From Corallochytrium limacisporum Hawaii (Eukaryota > Protista > Pluriformea), in contig PDIP01000080.1 in assembly GCA_002811645.1 (NCBI GenBank), forward strand, positions 59,571-112,010: 52,440 bases of DNA. The letters run 5' to 3'. The notes beneath the pieces were generated by a model. That model was not told the origin of the DNA. It worked only from the letters and a program-made list of their open reading frames with translations, and made no database searches. Positions 36,874-48,972 of this stretch are shown here, piece after piece. How positions within the stretch are numbered: position 1 is the stretch's first letter; each line of letters begins with the position of its first letter. Made by a program: the position numbers and the translations under genes.

Positions 36874-37920
36874 TTCCTTCTGTTCCACAATGTGTCTAAT
36901 CAAACACTATGTTCCGTTCCGGTTATTACGTTTATCCATCAAAATACTTTTGTTTTCTTCTACTGTAACATGTCGCTTTAGTTTCCAAGATTCTATTGGG
37001 GGTGCATTCTAGGCTCTGACAATCGATGATCTGTCAAGCTCGTGAGGACCAACGCGACCCTTCTTTCTCATATACCCATAGAAGGTAAACAAATGGACCA
37101 TTGATTTATTACATTCTACACTGGTATCAAGACACTGTCATCATGACCCATTGACACGCACAGAACCCGAGCTCAAACGATCATTGCGGCATAGAGTACA
37201 CACAGAAAAGAACAAACGACGTAAGTCTGCATCATCTTCGACCTTTTCACGAGGTTTGGATATTCAGTCTTCACTGTAGAGCTCTTTTTGGGAAACCAAT
37301 GCGCACACCTCAATTGCAACCTCTTTCGGACACGGTACGGCGTTCGACCACCTTCGCCAATGCACAAGTTCATTGCCTTCGGCTGTTCTCGTCTCCCCCT
37401 TCCCCCCCATCGACCCGACCTCCCCGTGGGAGTGGCGGCGTCCCTGTGCACACTGGCCCGCCTCTGTGTCCCCCAAACCGGTGATAAAAGCACCGACTTA
37501 CGTTGGGAGGACCGAGTTCATTAGGTCAAATTGAACCAGAAATAGGATTTGCGGCAGTACTATAGGGGCTGAATCATTTCGTAACGACTGGTACTGGAAT
37601 TCACCGTGCAATTCCTTGTGATTCTCCTCAGCACCACCTACCAACGGTGATGAAAGCAGCATGTGGCTGTGTTTGCGCACACCGGCAACGGAGTTCGTAA
37701 CGGTAACACAAATATTATATCCCATACATTTTCTTAGGGATTGTCCTGGAAATTAGACCGATCGCTCTTGATCGTAACAAACAAACAGAGATAGGGGAGA
37801 AGCTGACCGAACCTGCAGAAATGTCCATGTCATGTCACGCATGCCTGAATGTACGCAATCAACACGTTAAAGGCACAGGCCAGCACACCAACTTGTCTAC
37901 AGGATCCCCCCTCCCCCGTG

Positions 37921-38005
37921 GGGGGGGGGGCTGGAGGAAAAGAGGGGGGGGGAGATTTGGCTGGAAGAAGGTTCTTTAACCCGAACAAATCCCGACTACT
38001 ACCAA
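37921..38005 (+). repeat. Dispersed ~85-bp repeat, copy 1 (copy 2 at 48888-48972); possible MITE-like element end
   Basis: Identical G-run-ctggaggaaaagagggggggggagatttggctggaagaaggttctttaacccgaacaaatcccgactactaccaa, 11 kb apart. Both copies are preceded by a C-run. Confidence 0.85.
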
Positions 38006-38562: not shown

Positions 38563-39870
38563 CTATCTGAAGATCTTGGGCATGCCATTGCCGATGTGGT
38601 GGTCAACAAACTCATCCTCGAGGTTCGGTTCTGTGTCCATTGCCTTGGACCGACGCGCAGTCATGCCCTTTCCGGGAGGAATGATCCTGCTTTCTGAATC
38701 ACCGTCGTCTATACTGCGGCGTTTCTTTTTGAGTTTGCGCAAGTCCACGTCGCCCTCCAACACATTCATGACATCCTCAGCCGAAGTGTTGCGGCGGTTG
38801 AACGTTGTCTTGATCTCCTGGGGCGCATCAGCGTCTTGTTCATGACTTTGGCTGACATCACGACGCTTCTTCCTTCTGATCTTCATGACTTGGTCCACAG
38901 AGTCATTGCCGAAGAGATCACGGCGAATTCGGGCCTCTGCTTCGATCTTGGCCACGTCCTTGGGCGGTAAGGAGTCCACGTCCCGCCTCACGTATTCCTC
39001 GCCGCCCATGACCTCATTGGTACCTCGCTGGCTCCTCCTACGAAAACCAGTCTGAGGCATGACCGCTTCGGGCACCGAAATGTCAATTTCGGACCTTATC
39101 TGCTTTGTACGTTCAAGACCGATAGAAGCACTTTTGTTCGTGTCTTTGATGGAATCTGCAGGGTTGTCTTCACTGAGTGCCACATAACCATAGCCATCTC
39201 GGCGGTACCATACGTGATCTTTCGGATTCCGGACCAAACCTCTACGTTTCTTGTGGGTATAGTTGAAGTCTGGTGCATAGTCACCAACCGCACCGTTGTC
39301 AATGTCTCGACGCTTCTCCAGGTCAGCGACATGTACGGGATACTGCCCGTCAGCGTTTGTTCCGTCGAGATCCCTTCGCTGCACAGCAATACCGAATGCA
39401 CCAGTGGCGCTTTCTGTCTCTTCAAGGTAACACACTGTCGCACCGCTTTTGTTGACGGAAACAACCACCGGGGTCGTCGATACAGTGCCTGTCACAGTAA
39501 ATGCCTGAATGTTGATGCCACAGACTCCATCTGAGTCAAGGTGCAGGGTAAGAGAAGCCACATAGTCACCATCGTTGGCGTCGACAACTGTCAAAGCCAC
39601 CGGAGCATTGCTTAAGTCTGCACATTCCACTGTTGATCCCTCAGGTTCACTACCGAAGATCTTGGTTTCCGATGAAAAATGAGAGATGAACACGGATGAG
39701 CCACTGATGCCGATAACAAATTCCGGACCAAGACTGTCCGATACTGCGACAATCTCCAAGGACGAGCACAGATCCGGAAGGATTCGTGTGTCGTCTCTGT
39801 ATAGGGTGTTGGTCTCCGGGAGAGCCCGGTGGTAGCGGTCATTCCCCTTTGCTGCCATTTGTTCAGCCAT
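38563..39870 (-). CDS. Putative multi-peptide precursor A: conserved N-terminal domain plus 11 RR-delimited peptide cassettes (435 aa)
   Basis: N-terminal domain aligns with 40851-41777 (LEIVAVSDSLGPEFVIGISGSSVFISH versus YEINTVADNLGSEYTVAITGQALSISH). The C-terminal ~270 aa has 11 RR/KRR sites, 9 of them followed by D or S. Confidence 0.8.
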   Translation of the reverse strand: MAEQMAAKGNDRYHRALPETNTLYRDDTRILPDLCSSLEIVAVSDSLGPEFVIGISGSSVFISHFSSETKIFGSEPEGSTVECADLSNAPVALTVVDANDGDYVASLTLHLDSDGVCGINIQAFTVTGTVSTTPVVVSVNKSGATVCYLEETESATGAFGIAVQRRDLDGTNADGQYPVHVADLEKRRDIDNGAVGDYAPDFNYTHKKRRGLVRNPKDHVWYRRDGYGYVALSEDNPADSIKDTNKSASIGLERTKQIRSEIDISVPEAVMPQTGFRRRSQRGTNEVMGGEEYVRRDVDSLPPKDVAKIEAEARIRRDLFGNDSVDQVMKIRRKKRRDVSQSHEQDADAPQEIKTTFNRRNTSAEDVMNVLEGDVDLRKLKKKRRSIDDGDSESRIIPPGKGMTARRSKAMDTEPNLEDEFVDHHIGNGMPKIFR

Positions 39871-40850
39871 GTTGGTTGATTCCTATCCATGTTGGTTCGC
39901 AAGTCTACTCAGGTTGAATTGGTCTCTCAAATAGATGGAAGAATGTAATGATCCTCGTATGATGCGCAAGGGACACTCATTCCTTTCTTTCACTTGTGCT
40001 CCAGTGCAGTAGTCCTTTTGCATAAGAGTGATCGCCAAGACCCTTGGAAATTTCGAAAAAGAAAGATTAGCTGCAGATTGCAATTTCATGAGCAAGTTCG
40101 AACGACATGCCCACTTGCACAGAGTGGAGGCTCTCGGAACACCGTCGTTCCCCTCGACTTGGAGTTCCTTGTGCAAGTCTTAGGGAGAAGACCATCGAAA
40201 GATAAGCCCCAAGACCCTGCAATCTACGGGTACAAAATATATGTAGATCGAGGCCCTACAACATTTGTGCTTGAGACTTACACAAAGACAATATCACGAG
40301 CTGGTAGGTTTTTCAGTGACCGATCGGCAAACACTGCAGGAGTTTGAACAGCCGCCCGCTACATCGAATGTCCGCCGTTTTGAATTTGCTGGGTGATTCG
40401 TGCACCACCTGGAGATTTTTCGCCACCCTAGACCGAGCCGAGCACTTCGACCTCGATCGACTCCCCCAATACCTAAGTGTTTCTCATTCTCAAAGTATGA
40501 CAAGATGGAGAGCGGCCGACCCAAGGGGGGAGGGGAAATAGGGGACAATTGTGTAGATTTTTCTCTGTTCCATACGGAAACCACTCTAAAACCTCGCAGG
40601 GGGGCAGATGAAACCGGGCAGGTGAAATAATGGGACAGGGACGGGAGCATTGCAGAAGATGTAACGGCAGGGGTACCGCAATTGCACTACTGTTGATCAT
40701 GGCCGGTAAGAGCTTTATGATGTTCGTCGGCTGCCTGTGGAGATGCCCTTGATGATGGTTACGCAAACGAGTCCTAAAACTGGACTCCACAGAACCTTAA
40801 AGATGATTGGAAAAGATAACGGATTCGGATTCTAATTGGTTTGAGTCATG

Positions 40851-41777
40851 TTAGTTACATTGGACATTACCCTCCCTGAACTCGTACTCAGCGCCGTCTT
40901 CCGGAGGACAGTTAGAGCGACGTTTGGTAGCCTCGACGCCTATGTCGTTTCCCTCCTCCTTAGCCATAGTTCCGTCTTGGACAGGGAATCGTCGTGGAAC
41001 ATCACTACGGCGCTTCACGCCGCCGTAGCCAGCTTTGACCATGCCGGAGCCGTTGTCTATGACAAGGTCACTGTCGCGACGCTTTGCACCGCTGAAGCCA
41101 GCTTTCATCATGCCAGAGCCGTTGTCTATAACAAGGTCACTGTCGCGACGCTTGATTTGAGCGATGTTCTCTGTCTTTTCACCTTCCTCTGGGACGGCGG
41201 CAAAGTCGATCAATTTGACCATGTCAATCGCCCCACGGGTCTTCTTGCGGCCGCTTCCGGAGAATCTTGGTCCCCAGGCCGACGCGGGTGGCGGGAGGAT
41301 GGCAGCCCTAACGTCAGACGCGGGCAGAACGGAGACAACAGTCGCGAGCGGGTCATCCTCGTGGCCGGTTACTACTACGACGGTTCCGTCTTCGTCGTCA
41401 CCAGTTTCGACATTGTCTTTGGCTACCTGATCAATGTCAGTGAAATCGATGTTTGTGACCGTCACGGAACAGCGCTGCGCGCCGCCGATCCATTCTGCTT
41501 CGAGAGCCAGAGTTACCTCTGCAATATGGTCGCCGTTGGCGGTGTCGGTGAGGGAAAAGTTTACAACCGGTCCATTGGCCACACCGCAAGGGTTTTTGCT
41601 GTCACTATTCGTGTTAGAGTTCCCTTGATGGGAGATGCTAAGAGCCTGTCCAGTTATTGCAACAGTGTACTCCGAGCCGAGATTGTCCGCGACCGTATTT
41701 ATCTCATAAGGCTGGAGCTTAGGCACATCGGCGGATCGAATGTGTTGCTCCGAGTCGTAGTTCAGTTGCAGTGCCAT
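40851..41777 (-). CDS. Putative multi-peptide precursor B carrying two actin-like peptides (308 aa)
   Basis: Paralogous N-terminal domain. KRR-flanked cassettes DSDLVIDNGSGMMKAGFSGA and DSDLVIDNGSGMVKAGYGGV. Confidence 0.82.
   Translation of the reverse strand: MALQLNYDSEQHIRSADVPKLQPYEINTVADNLGSEYTVAITGQALSISHQGNSNTNSDSKNPCGVANGPVVNFSLTDTANGDHIAEVTLALEAEWIGGAQRCSVTVTNIDFTDIDQVAKDNVETGDDEDGTVVVVTGHEDDPLATVVSVLPASDVRAAILPPPASAWGPRFSGSGRKKTRGAIDMVKLIDFAAVPEEGEKTENIAQIKRRDSDLVIDNGSGMMKAGFSGAKRRDSDLVIDNGSGMVKAGYGGVKRRSDVPRRFPVQDGTMAKEEGNDIGVEATKRRSNCPPEDGAEYEFREGNVQCN
41016..41153 (-). repeat. Coding 69-bp tandem repeat x2 (KRR + actin-like 20-mer)
   Basis: Units 41153-41085 and 41084-41016 differ at three synonymous codons and four mostly conservative residues. 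Confidence 0.92.
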
Positions 41778-44700
41778 TTCGACAACGCTCGTCTACACTT
41801 TTTCCTCTATCGTGTTCGTTATCGCTGCTTGCACGCAATATTTGATGGTGACAGCTCGATGGAGGATCAAAGGGACCTGGGCTTAAGTACAGTGGTGCCT
41901 TTTCTACGTACAGTATCCTTTGGCACCACCTCATGCTCTGTGTTAGCTACATTTGGGTGAGGTTGTGAAGAAATGGGCTGGCCTACAGAGGAAGACACGA
42001 CCACTGGCTGATTGATTCACTGTCATAGACACACATTTCCAATGCCTCTAGCAAATGAAAGGGCACCAAAGTGAGGAAATGACTGGTAAGGTAACATTGC
42101 GGGTGGGTTGAGCCAAGGGCGCCCTCTCGGGGACCCAGGAGCGATTCTTTTGCCCTTCCGGTCTCAGTTTTTCAATAGCGAGAGGTCCTAAGAGTGAAAG
42201 ATCGGGCGACGATATCTGCCCCCACCCCTCCCCGGCCGGTTGAGGCACTGGCGTGTGGATCGATCCCTTGTCACCCCCTCCTTTCACTTCTTATACATCC
42301 TAGACTTCAATTTAGTGCCAAAACCCCCCTGAAACCCATACTGATTAGCCGGCCTGCTGTCTCGTGCTTGCATGCGGAACTCTAGGGCAACAGTTAAGTA
42401 CTGCCACCGACTTAGGGTGTCCACTGGAGCCAGGGTATGATAAATAGGCCCCAATACACTCACATCCTGCATTGTACGATAGTATATGAACTGCTTCATC
42501 GAACTGTGGAGCAGTCGGCACTAAATGGACCCCCGATCAGACACTGGCATCGAAGCTGCGGGGTAATTGGCGACAGTTCAGACAAACCAAAGACTTGATC
42601 GTCCGGCCTGATAAGTCTCTTGGGTTTCTTATTCAACCAATTCATATACTGAATGTACGTGTTTTTTTGCGGATCCTACGTTCAATGATTTGCACGGCCC
42701 CGGGAAGGCTGACGTGCGCGACTTATGAAACCCGTTGTCATAATTTTGCGAATGCTTGAGTCCCCCTCCCCCCCCCCTTTCTTCCCTACTGAGAGAGAAC
42801 TGACGGTAGGGCTAGATCCCGAACGGTGCGGAGCTATCTACGCTCATCCTCCGCTGTTTTCTGCAGAAAGAGCTTACCGCTGGGTGGGTCCGTGTACCGA
42901 TGATACGACCGCAGTCCTCGCGGTACTGAACATACTGTGCGGCCCAACGGGAGTCCAAGGTGTTTTGCAACAGCCAAACCGAGGGCATAGCTAATGAAAT
43001 TAGTGAAGGTACAGAGGCTTCCTGATCTCACCCGTCACTGTCCCCCATGGACTTTGGGTATCCCTGTATCGCAGATGTCGTGCACATGAAATCTGCCTGA
43101 CTGTCATAGACATTTCATTGTCCCCAATGACATACAGTGATGAGGGTTCGCAGCTCACAACGGCAATCGGGGTGCGCACCTTCCGTTTCATTTTTGTGGT
43201 TAAGGGTCCAGTTAGTACAATGGTCGGTCACATACAATTGACATCATTTAGGAATTCTTGCATACACAATATACGTCACCGACACAACCGTGAGCACCAT
43301 AGCAGTTGATTTAATGAGCATGGTGGGAGGGAAACAGGAAAAGAGAGAGATAGAGCTTCGCACGGGGAGTTGGCAGAGTCCAGTTTTCTTGGATTCCGTC
43401 CGCTCCTTTGCGCCATATTTCCTGATACTTGGTATAGTTCACTTTGATTGGTCTCACTTCGATTTTACGACAGCTACCGCGAACACTTGGTGGATGTTCT
43501 GCTGTGGTCTGTTCTCCGTCTCGTTCTGGCATGGCTGTCTACAGCAGGGTCCAACTTTTCTCATGGACGGCAAGACTGTTTCAGAAGGAAAAAATCAAAC
43601 AGTCCGATCCCACGTACACACAAGATGATGGCCGTTCGCCAGCTCAAGGGGGCCGCGGGTCCACTTCCATTTCTTGTTCGCCGAAGTCCTCGTACCACGA
43701 CACGTCCGTGAAGGGGGCCTCATTTCGCACGCCTTCAAATTGAACAGAATATATCTATATAGAACACTATATCATATTTCTTTCCATATTTGGGAGAGGC
43801 AAGGCTCGGGAGCGTCAGAGGACCTTTCTGCTTTGTTGCTTGGCCGTTTGGTTCCTGAAAGCATTGAACGTCGACATTGAGAGAATAATCATCTTGATGA
43901 CGTTAAAGCATACTCAAATACTACAAGCTTTCTCTCCTCTTTGTTCTTGACGAGGAGGGATGGTCATCGTACCATCCTATGGTGTGGCGGTGTTGGGTGA
44001 AGCAAGTTATGGAATAGATACCGCTGTGGAATTTGTGGCCTCGAAGTCTGACGGTACCTCGCTTCTTTGGCATAGCTTCCGTACTTGCCATTGAAGAGTT
44101 AAGTCGCCAAAATCCCTCAGACTGTGCTGGCATGTGTTTGCACCTTTCGCATTCTTCTTAGGTGATGATATATATTGTGTTGTCTTTAGGGAATGCAACG
44201 CCACCCACTCAATATAAGTAACTGACCTGGAACTCTCTTAAGACTTCCAGAGCAGCATGCTGATCAGACGCAGTCACAGTTCCACCGGTGGGGCAAGTCT
44301 TCGCATGCTCTCTTCCTTACCCCCTTCCTCCTGGATCGTTTCCGCTACTGTCCTCAGAATGATAAATTTTGGGTCTTCGCTTCTTGGTATTGGTGGAATT
44401 TTGGAGTCTTACTCGTCTTTTGCATCAGTGCAACCTGCCTGCGTTTTGGTCGGAGGGAATCCTCGGGGTCGTTTCCAAAACGTTCCACGACACGCTCCCA
44501 GATCACCGATTCAAAATTCTAACTGCTCTTTTGTGGTTATTGCCGACCGCGGTTGTGGCCTGGCCAACAGCGTCCAAAATGCAGAAGTCAGGAGATAGCT
44601 TAAACAGATTGGCAGGAATCGTATACGTAAGTCCACAGCGAAATAGGATTACAGATAAAGGTAACCGAGATCTATCAACAGCTTAATACATATATTCGAA

Positions 44701-46400: not shown

Positions 46401-48972
46401 GACGGAGAAAAAGATGAAAGAAAGAGGAACGCGATACCAAGTTCTATGTGGACCAAAGGACAGTTAGCAGGTAAAACAGGAATCAGCCACGCCCCCATCA
46501 TCTGCCAGTGTCCACATTTGAGTTTCTTTCTTTGGTATTCGGGTGGTGTTGGAAGGCCTGTTTGTTGATTAAATTTGGTGCAGTGCTATCCCGACGGTCA
46601 TGCTCGATGCGTTTAATACTCGCAGAGTTGGTCGAACGTCAGTCTGAACTCTGCTTTTGGTGCGCATAGCTGTCGCCAGAGTTTCGAGGATACGTGTTGA
46701 TATGCTTTGGGTGTGCGGCAGTGGGGCATGGTCAAGAACGTACGTAACGTCTATTTATATCTCGGGGGGATCGAAGGATGAGTATTCTTGTGCGTGTGTG
46801 CATGGCCTTTTTAAGAGGTTTTAATGGTTGGTTTCACGAGGGCTACCAGCGGACTGTGTTCCAGAGGGGCCTGATACGGGCTGGGTTGCAGAAAGATTGA
46901 CGCTCGTGATACACTCTCCATGTCGCAAAGTTGTTTCTGTATCTCACTTCCCTTTTACTGGAATAGCGACCAGGCCCAAAGGGAATCATGCTTTTCGTGC
47001 GCTCCCGCAGAGAGACTCGATTAACGTCGGTTTCACCAGGGAGTAATCGTTCGGTTGTACTCGCCAACATAGCAATAATCGAGATCGTGAAAAGGCAAAG
47101 AGGTGAACCCCATTGAAATTGGTGCATGCAAGGACTAGGAATCGGACCCGATGGATACACACAAATCTATGACGGGGTCCGCTATTGTTGGCTGTCATTT
47201 ACCTCTGCGCATAGGTTGGTTTTGGCTCCAAAGTAACATTGCAGGACGACACTTGGCTCCTCCGTTAACCAGGCTGATGGGGCAAGTAACATGGTAGGCG
47301 ACAGAGGCAGGTACGATTTGGCAGTGTCTGTCTAAGCATGTGTGTTACATATTTGATGTGTGTCGCCGTCACCAGCGTCGCTCATGCGGCCCTTTCTTAT
47401 GTGTCCTTGACATCATTTGCGCTCAATTATCATCCATCAATGCATTCATTTCTCCACAACAGCAACCCAATCATCATCTTGTTTCAGCGCTTGTCGGGCC
47501 ATCTGATGACCGACACCACAACGCCATCTTGGCTGACTGACGCTTGAACATGGAACTGGAAAACGGACCATGATCGTAGACGGGGATTGCTGAATTTGGC
47601 AGGGGAACGCAGATTGTCTACAGCATAAAAATCTCTCCCAGAATGCACAAGGAAATGCCAATTGGCCACCGTAAGTCTACCGAAAGGACAGCAACGTCGG
47701 AAAAGCTTGGATGGGGAGAGTGTTTCCCTCATACTGTCAATTCTTAAATCTCGCCCACAATCTCTCCGCATTGCATTGGCAAATTCACTCAATCTACAAC
47801 GACAATATCCCGTATCGCCGTTTGAAACGAACAAATCATTATGTTTCTGTTCCCGTTGGATGCTTGCTTGTCCTCCTGGCTACCCCGGCCCATCTCAAAA
47901 TCTCATAGAAAATTTGCACGGAGGAAGGGAGGTGACGGGGTCAAGCACTCACGAGGCATCCATCTTTCCCTGTAGAGTAAGCCGAGGCACGCTAAACGTA
48001 GGGCTATATTCGGTCTCTCCAATCTCCTTATTTTCAATCCCTCCCCTCTATCCCCTTTCCTTTTCCTTTTCCCCTTGCGCGCTGCGGTTTACTTTGAAAG
48101 TTTTTTTTCCCCCTTTGTTTTTTTTCTTCTTCTTCCAAGAGCTGGGGACCGTGCCGGTAACAAAAGGTATTTTTTCCTGCTTCATTTGACGGCGGGCCGA
48201 GAGATGCAAACATTCCATTTTCGGTTCCTCAGCACGCTGGTTAGCGATGTGATAGATCTATACATTGATTATGGAAAGTTGCATCCGAACGGAGTCTCCT
48301 CCGTTTCCAAGTGCGGGGAAACGAATCACTGCTCCGCGGGCGGGCGGGGGAGGCTGGGGGGGACGCATCCCAGGAATTTGTTATTTTTGCTGCTGAGATC
48401 AGTGCTGTTTCAGTTGCAACTGTGGTGGGTTCATGAGCCGATGGTAGTGAAGGACAAGAGGGGCAAAATAAAAGTTTAAAGGCAAATCACAAAAGACAAA
48501 AAGAACTCCAGCAATTTTTTTCAAATTGTAAAAGTTTTAAAGTTAGTTTTCCCTGTGCAAAACTACCCCAGACCCGGGGAGCACCCTGGCCGTCACGATT
48601 ACCCGAGCAGAGAGGATCCTCCTCACTCGATTCTCCGTTTCCATTGGGCTTGCGCCAATAGTTTTTCTACCTGTTTTTATTTTTTCCTTTTTGGAAATCC
48701 GGGGGCATTACCTTTGGTTGTTCGAAGTGTCACGTCGAAGCAAACTTTTAAGGTTTTAACCGAATTTCGCAAAAGGGCAAAAGCCAACTGGCACCGCCGG
48801 ACGAGACAATTTGCTAGGAACACTCCGGGGCCCCAGTGAACCACACCTTCGCTCGATAAACCCCGCCCCCTCCCCCCCCCCCCCGGGGGGGGGGGGGCTG
48901 GAGGAAAAGAGGGGGGGGGAGATTTGGCTGGAAGAAGGTTCTTTAACCCGAACAAATCCCGACTACTACCAA

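Follow-up and report, generated by a model that had tools for sequence, protein, structure and literature searches.

The tail of an apparently orphan protein of Corallochytrium limacisporum, a unicellular relative of animals, carries, twice in tandem, a short segment whose sequence shows clear descent from the N-terminal end of actin, with a likeness far above chance. The protein is encoded by the open reading frame p1, located on the minus strand (40851-41777; 308 aa, stop included) of the window, that is, of the whole stretch of 52,440 nucleotides that was analysed. Taken together, the evidence leads us to the tentative reading that p1 is a leaderless orphan in which an actin hairpin would have been captured, duplicated and then kept by selection, and which would behave inside the cell as a look-alike of this part of actin. 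If p1 is expressed, it would be a clean natural case of a very short and highly conserved piece of a protein captured, duplicated and selected in an orphan. Such a case bears on the recruitment of ready-made structural or recognition elements by new genes, and on whether the 20-residue actin hairpin has an activity of its own, such as recognition by the machineries that fold or modify actin; if the tail is a decaying relic, it would be a minor curiosity. The question is testable, since stable transfection has been established in C. limacisporum (bioRxiv 10.1101/2020.11.12.379420).

Architecture of p1 and the likeness of its cassettes to actin

The product of p1 is made up of an N-domain, a linker and a tail in which dibasic clusters recur. 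The N-domain (residues 1-135; 41373-41777, minus strand) is beta-rich and is common to p1 and to its tandem paralogue p2 (38563-39870, minus strand; 435 aa), which lies directly downstream of p1 on the same strand. In the tail of p1 (residues 206-308; 40854-41162, minus strand) acidic segments are separated by five runs of at least two basic residues, K or R, and the longer tail of p2 contains eleven such runs. Residues 209-254 of p1 are two tandem units of 23 codons, each formed by a KRR triplet followed by a 20-mer, all on the minus strand: unit 1 comprises residues 209-231 (41085-41153), with its actin-like core at residues 215-230 (41088-41135), and unit 2 comprises residues 232-254 (41016-41084), with its core at residues 238-253 (41019-41066). 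Tandem Repeats Finder describes this arrangement as a 69-bp period present in 1.9 copies with 90% matches, the two units differing at 9 of their 69 bases (60/69 identical). A third KRR (41007-41015) follows and introduces a 12-residue stretch (together 40971-41015, minus strand) in which the actin-derived sequence may go on (as far as actin residues about 24-36 are concerned); the triplet is thus found before, between and after both units, and the reading frame runs unbroken across both cassette junctions. A recheck of the coordinates gave the open reading frame, both cassettes and the KRR triplets around them exactly the same positions as in the earlier note on this DNA.

The likeness to actin was assessed with several tools. 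In BLASTP, the core of copy 1 is identical to residues 8-23 of the actin of this same genome at 13 of 16 positions (E-value of 1e-5 for a single comparison), and the core of copy 2 retains 12 of the 16 residues of the actin phosphate-1 hairpin, the strand-loop-strand motif of residues about 8-23, which is therefore present twice in p1. When the genome's own actin was used as a phmmer query, p1 scored 21.6 bits, compared with at most 3.0 bits across 200 shuffles of p1, and the HMMER alignment of copy 2 crosses the third KRR, pairing p1 residues 237-262 with actin residues 7-28. The Pfam Actin profile matches the whole reading frame with an E-value of 5e-5, under its gathering score, and the tail alone with 27.3 bits, the cut-off being 27; in both the match is restricted to profile positions 5-25. 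A sequence search of the PDB with the tail returned actin or Arp1 throughout the best 60 of 114 matches (E ≤ 1), in agreement with the match of copy 1 to yeast actin at 14 of 16 positions that the earlier note had proposed, and the top match listed is an actin that naturally bears two of the variant residues of the cassettes. Among the actin-family genes of this genome, conventional actin is the nearest to the cassettes.

The likeness is confined to a small part of actin (PF00022). The full fold of about 375 residues, with its phosphate-2, adenosine and connecting motifs, is absent from p1 by Pfam, by alignment and by hhalign; p1 shares the phosphate-1 hairpin but holds only some 20, perhaps some 30, of the 375 residues, and holds them twice. 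The proposal that an actin-derived fragment sits in an otherwise non-actin protein, and that the cassettes are not a pseudogene copy of actin, is thus borne out. The hexapeptide D-N-G-S-G-M at the centre of the hairpin is also found in a GTPase-like ORF (L019; G000:C186:279556-281573) and in a GHKL-ATPase-like ORF (L020; G000:C229:73546-75563), where it is a convergent nucleotide-binding turn of the D-x-G-x-G type. As far as sequence comparison goes, the bare hexamer is not diagnostic of actin, whereas the 16-mer is. A search of the genome with a degenerate version of the hexamer recovered actin, p1 (twice) and these two unrelated ATPase/GTPase motifs, and no other captured actin hairpin.

Whether more of the tails derives from actin is less clear. 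The cassette that follows the two units had been described as an echo of the continuation of actin, and what stands of this observation is suggestive only: the 12 residues after the third KRR resemble the continuation with a positional shuffle p of 0.03, which becomes 0.11 over 20 residues, and the HMMER alignment reaches actin residue 28. For the rest of the p1 tail, the best hhalign alignment falls on actin residues 36-65, the place expected if the two were colinear, with an E-value of 0.5, and the whole tail compared with whole actin gives a p of 0.77. In p2, the first cassette, which occupies the same position as unit 1 of p1 (39253-39306, minus strand), shows a weak, suggestive echo of actin residues 10-27 (shuffle p of 0.07 against whole actin, 0.014 against actin 1-40), and another cassette (38878-38919, minus strand) bears a candidate likeness to actin residues 179-192, with a shuffle p of 0.0003 and a BLASTP E-value of 0.022. 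The p2 tail as a whole scores 0.8 bits in phmmer (p about 0.02) and 2.9 bits with an HMM built from four actin sequences, a value reached by none of 500 shuffles. Its global alignment (38566-39330) places segments opposite actin residues about 129-230 in order (z of 2.8, p of 0.014), and the echoes include a stretch beginning at actin Arg177. However, permuting the order of the p2 cassettes does not make the alignment significantly worse (p of 0.14-0.24), and in profile tests of the p2 tail hhalign gives an E-value of 0.16 and Pfam no match. A derivation of the whole tails from decayed actin sequence cut into cassettes is therefore suggestive, not demonstrated.

Coding status of the gene pair and origin of the cassettes

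In both p1 and p2, the proposed frame has the best codon-usage log-likelihood of the six frames, for the N-domains and for the tails separately, and the score of 0.19 per codon falls between the extremes seen in six reference genes (0.10-0.41). The chance of finding such frames open is about 4e-7 for the 308 codons of p1 and 9e-10 for the 435 codons of p2. The first 130 residues or so of the two proteins can be aligned, and the N-domains are 33% identical (E-value of 2e-9), the BLAST match covering residues 39-118. Given the length of the frame, its gene-like codon usage and the existence of a paralogue in which the N-domain is conserved, p1 is most likely a real, taxon-restricted protein-coding gene. 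The contrary view, that no functional gene is present and that the frame is untranscribed or belongs to a dying pseudogene region, can appeal to the lack of homologues of this orphan, to a low recognition score from a language model and to the adjoining ORF-poor, repeat-bearing stretch of 7 kb; it has to reconcile these with two adjoining frames that both stay open, with gene-like codon usage in the correct frame of each and with N-domains conserved between them, and we regard it as improbable. An antisense frame of 370 codons (40848-41960, plus strand) spans all of p1. It was rejected as a gene, given that codon statistics prefer the minus strand and that actin shows the same antisense effect, and it is best seen as a by-product of codon usage.

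Relatives of p1 and p2 were sought at several depths. None was found in a word-indexed search of 5.8 billion clustered proteins or in a scan of metagenome contigs, an exhaustive HMMER search of 1.84 billion representatives with a profile of the N-domain gave no credible relative, and searches of the C. limacisporum genome with p1, p2 and the profile revealed no further member of the family. The N-domain has no match in Pfam, in the PDB (profile search) or in the ESM Atlas, and AlphaFold models made from the single sequences were poor, with pLDDT values of 36 for p1 and 34 for p2. One candidate, a bacterial Ig-like tandem-repeat protein (P0003, 485 aa), was matched with an E-value of 3.5e-4 over five stretches and was judged probably spurious; the match may hint at a beta-sandwich in the N-domain.

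The assembly comprises 24,109,830 bp and contains few introns. The reference actin gene, itself intron-less, lies on another contig (G000:C239, locus L001 1498-2625, minus strand), and its product is presumably of the animal type. The comparison of the 69-bp units with the genome's own actin gene, which the earlier note had suggested as a check, shows 36 of 51 bases identical over the aligned codons (71%), and the cassette DNA has no further match elsewhere in the 24.1-Mb assembly. By the method of Nei and Gojobori, the cassettes differ from actin with a saturated dS of 1.2-1.4 and a dN of 0.17-0.20 (dN/dS about 0.12-0.17), synonymous change exceeding non-synonymous change with a Fisher p of 0.008. 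The sole copy of this DNA in the genome, the identity of 36/51 and the dS of 1.2-1.4 argue for an old capture and against a chimera, and point to an actin fragment that would later have been held under constraint. An assembly chimera with an actin locus, or contamination from one, was accordingly rejected at the level of the assembly: the DNA is present in a single copy and is only 71% identical to a gene situated on a different contig, and the frame remains open through both junctions, so that we attach next to no probability to this explanation. A second conventional actin gene was observed about 5 kb from the first and in the opposite orientation (G000:C239 at about 212.3-213.5 kb; L021 757-2046, plus strand), and it could be a closer donor of the cassette than the reference gene.

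For copy 1 against copy 2, the same method gives a dS of 0.37 and a dN of 0.09. The claim of synonymous divergence around a fixed core is correct: over codons 1-15 of the unit two differences are synonymous and none is non-synonymous, and the final eight codons hold a disproportionate share of the differences between copies (Fisher p of 0.007). All these selection statistics concern 16-23 codons of a stretch that was picked because it looked conserved. The idea of selection acting on the peptide is favoured, though on few informative sites, and we take the statistics as moderate evidence, short of proof, that the first strand of the cassette and its loop have been under purifying selection.

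Basic clusters and the possible role of the hairpin

The runs of basic residues in the two tails are more clustered than in shuffles that preserve composition (P of 0.0006 for p1 and 0.0002 for p2). The residue directly after the run is D, S, N or G in 13 of the 16 runs of p1 and p2 combined, the residues that precede the runs are A, V, T, H, Y, F, I, N or L, with no G among them, and several runs read R-R-x-S/T. The earlier note had interpreted the KRR triplets as cleavage sites from which the cassettes are released as discrete peptides. In its fullest form, this interpretation makes p1 a secreted or vesicular polyprotein precursor, cut by a convertase after KRR or RR into peptides of about 20 residues, two of which would be actin hairpins acting as signals, mimics or decoys. 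In its favour, the basic runs are evenly spaced, significantly clustered and mostly followed by the same small set of residues in both paralogues, and KRR stands inside the stretch colinear with actin as if sites had been inserted there. The genome also encodes one convertase of the kexin/furin type (S8 plus P domain), and, like p1, its gene model has no leader, so that 5' exons can be overlooked in this genome.

Release at KRR nonetheless fared poorly when the start of the protein was considered. Hydropathy reveals neither a signal peptide nor a membrane segment in p1 or p2, the N-termini of which are hydrophilic (the highest value over 10 residues in the first 45 residues of p1 is 0.69). Codon usage is already gene-like over codons 1-24 of p1 and codons 1-38 of p2, the coding signal is negative in all frames over the 150 nt upstream of each ATG, and no convincing leader exon was detected within about 1-1.5 kb upstream by a scan that is weak, having failed likewise for its control, the convertase. 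Moreover, there are only two repeats, the cassettes of p2 are all different, and neither conserved cysteines nor a Gly ahead of the basic sites are present. A secretory convertase is unlikely to meet proteins that are leaderless, unless the 5' gene models are wrong, and p1, as predicted, is probably leaderless and hence cytosolic or nuclear; the precursor interpretation is unlikely in our judgement. The basic runs may equally be nuclear-import signals, motifs for basophilic kinases or sites for an Arg/Lys-specific protease of the cytosol. As to the convertase gene itself (G000:C7 at about 127.1-129.5 kb; L017, L024), no signal peptide follows from its first in-frame ATGs and a plausible 3' splice site is seen just upstream of its ORF, which implies that 5' exons can escape a plain reading of ORFs here.

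Kex2-processed repeat proteins are recognised by a signal peptide, at least three repeats and processing sites between the repeats (PMC6339444). Of these three features p1 displays one, the KR/RR/KK sites between repeats; it has no signal peptide, and the near-identical repeats number 1.9-2 in p1 and are lacking in p2. It shares with these fungal proteins and with precursors of the alpha-factor type (PMC6339444) the short cassettes, the KR/RR-type sites, repeats that vary in sequence and a genome that encodes a kexin-like convertase. Unlike them, it has no signal peptide, only two repeats and a conserved N-domain of 135 residues, and its host is not a fungus. The prohormone and neuropeptide precursors of animals resemble p1 and p2, which likewise come from a holozoan, in stringing different peptides along a single chain with dibasic sites as their boundaries; p1 and p2 differ from them in being leaderless, in having no Gly of the amidation type at the C-terminal end of the peptides and in showing no homology to known precursors.

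Two further systems can be set beside p1. In the PROPEP/Pep system of plants, leaderless cytosolic pro-peptides are cut by Arg/Lys-specific metacaspases. p1 likewise has no signal peptide, its cleavage would be expected after basic residues, and one gene of the Peptidase_C14 (caspase/metacaspase) family, a candidate for such a protease, is present in the genome; p1 has no homology to the pro-peptides. In integrated decoys, a fragment of a target protein is built into another protein, and the known ones are whole domains carried by immune receptors. p1 similarly embeds a conserved piece of an abundant and much-targeted host protein, but what it embeds is a hairpin of 20 residues that is buried in actin, and it does so in an orphan with no receptor or signalling domain.

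The sequence of events that we tentatively propose would begin long ago, when the 5'-terminal part of an actin coding sequence was incorporated into the C-terminal tail of p1. The captured piece would be the strand-loop-strand that binds the phosphates of ATP, from about residue 2 or 8 to residue 23 of actin and perhaps as far as residue 35 or so. The 69-bp unit, made of the fragment plus KRR, would have been duplicated in tandem afterwards, and purifying selection would have held both copies actin-like as the remaining tail evolved freely. The module would then act inside the cell, displayed as a look-alike of the N-terminal hairpin of actin, and would engage, or compete for, a factor that handles the start of actin before its burial, such as the machinery of folding or of N-terminal processing; it could do so either intact or after cleavage at the basic clusters, for which a cytosolic protease specific for Arg/Lys might be responsible. 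Mimicry of the surfaces of native actin is unlikely because the hairpin is buried in the folded protein, and for the same reason factors that act before or during folding, or in N-terminal processing, are likelier to see the copy than the ordinary actin-binding proteins.

An actin-related role for the hairpin is denied by the view of the tail as a relic, in which a fragment, or a whole fused actin-like domain, decayed to a charged and largely disordered sequence, the hairpin surviving because of some general structural demand or, the sites being few, by luck. This view would account for the faint echoes of actin past the hairpin, which stand mostly in actin order (actin 36-65 in p1, about 129-230 in p2), and for the second half of the cassette, which is already diverging; it also finds precedent in several actin-fold genes with long extensions in the genome. 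The extra echoes are not significant in the profile tests and neither is the permutation of cassette order, and 13/16 residues would hardly have stayed identical while the synonymous sites became saturated unless nearly every residue was under selection; we consider a relic somewhat less likely than the proposal above, though the likeliest of its rivals. The same echoes enter a further reading, to which we give little weight, in which p1 and p2 would be a leaderless family of dibasic-punctuated polyproteins derived from a broken-up actin: p1 would retain the phosphate-1 hairpin twice and p2 remnants, among them the region of actin Arg177, and the cassettes, either displayed intact or set free by an Arg/Lys-specific protease when the cell is damaged or stressed, would pass for actin, serving as danger signals or luring actin-modifying enzymes and toxins.

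Genomic surroundings

The region of p1 and p2 adjoins a chitin synthase gene. A direct repeat of 100 nt, 98% identical between its copies, occurs at window positions 37906-38005 and 48873-48972, and the two copies bracket p2, p1 and the ORF-poor stretch of about 7 kb, in which GA-rich simple repeats and runs of N are found. As the repeat is present only twice in the assembly, it is not a dispersed MITE; the pair could stem from duplication within the region, delimit an old insertion or reflect an assembly problem beside a gap.
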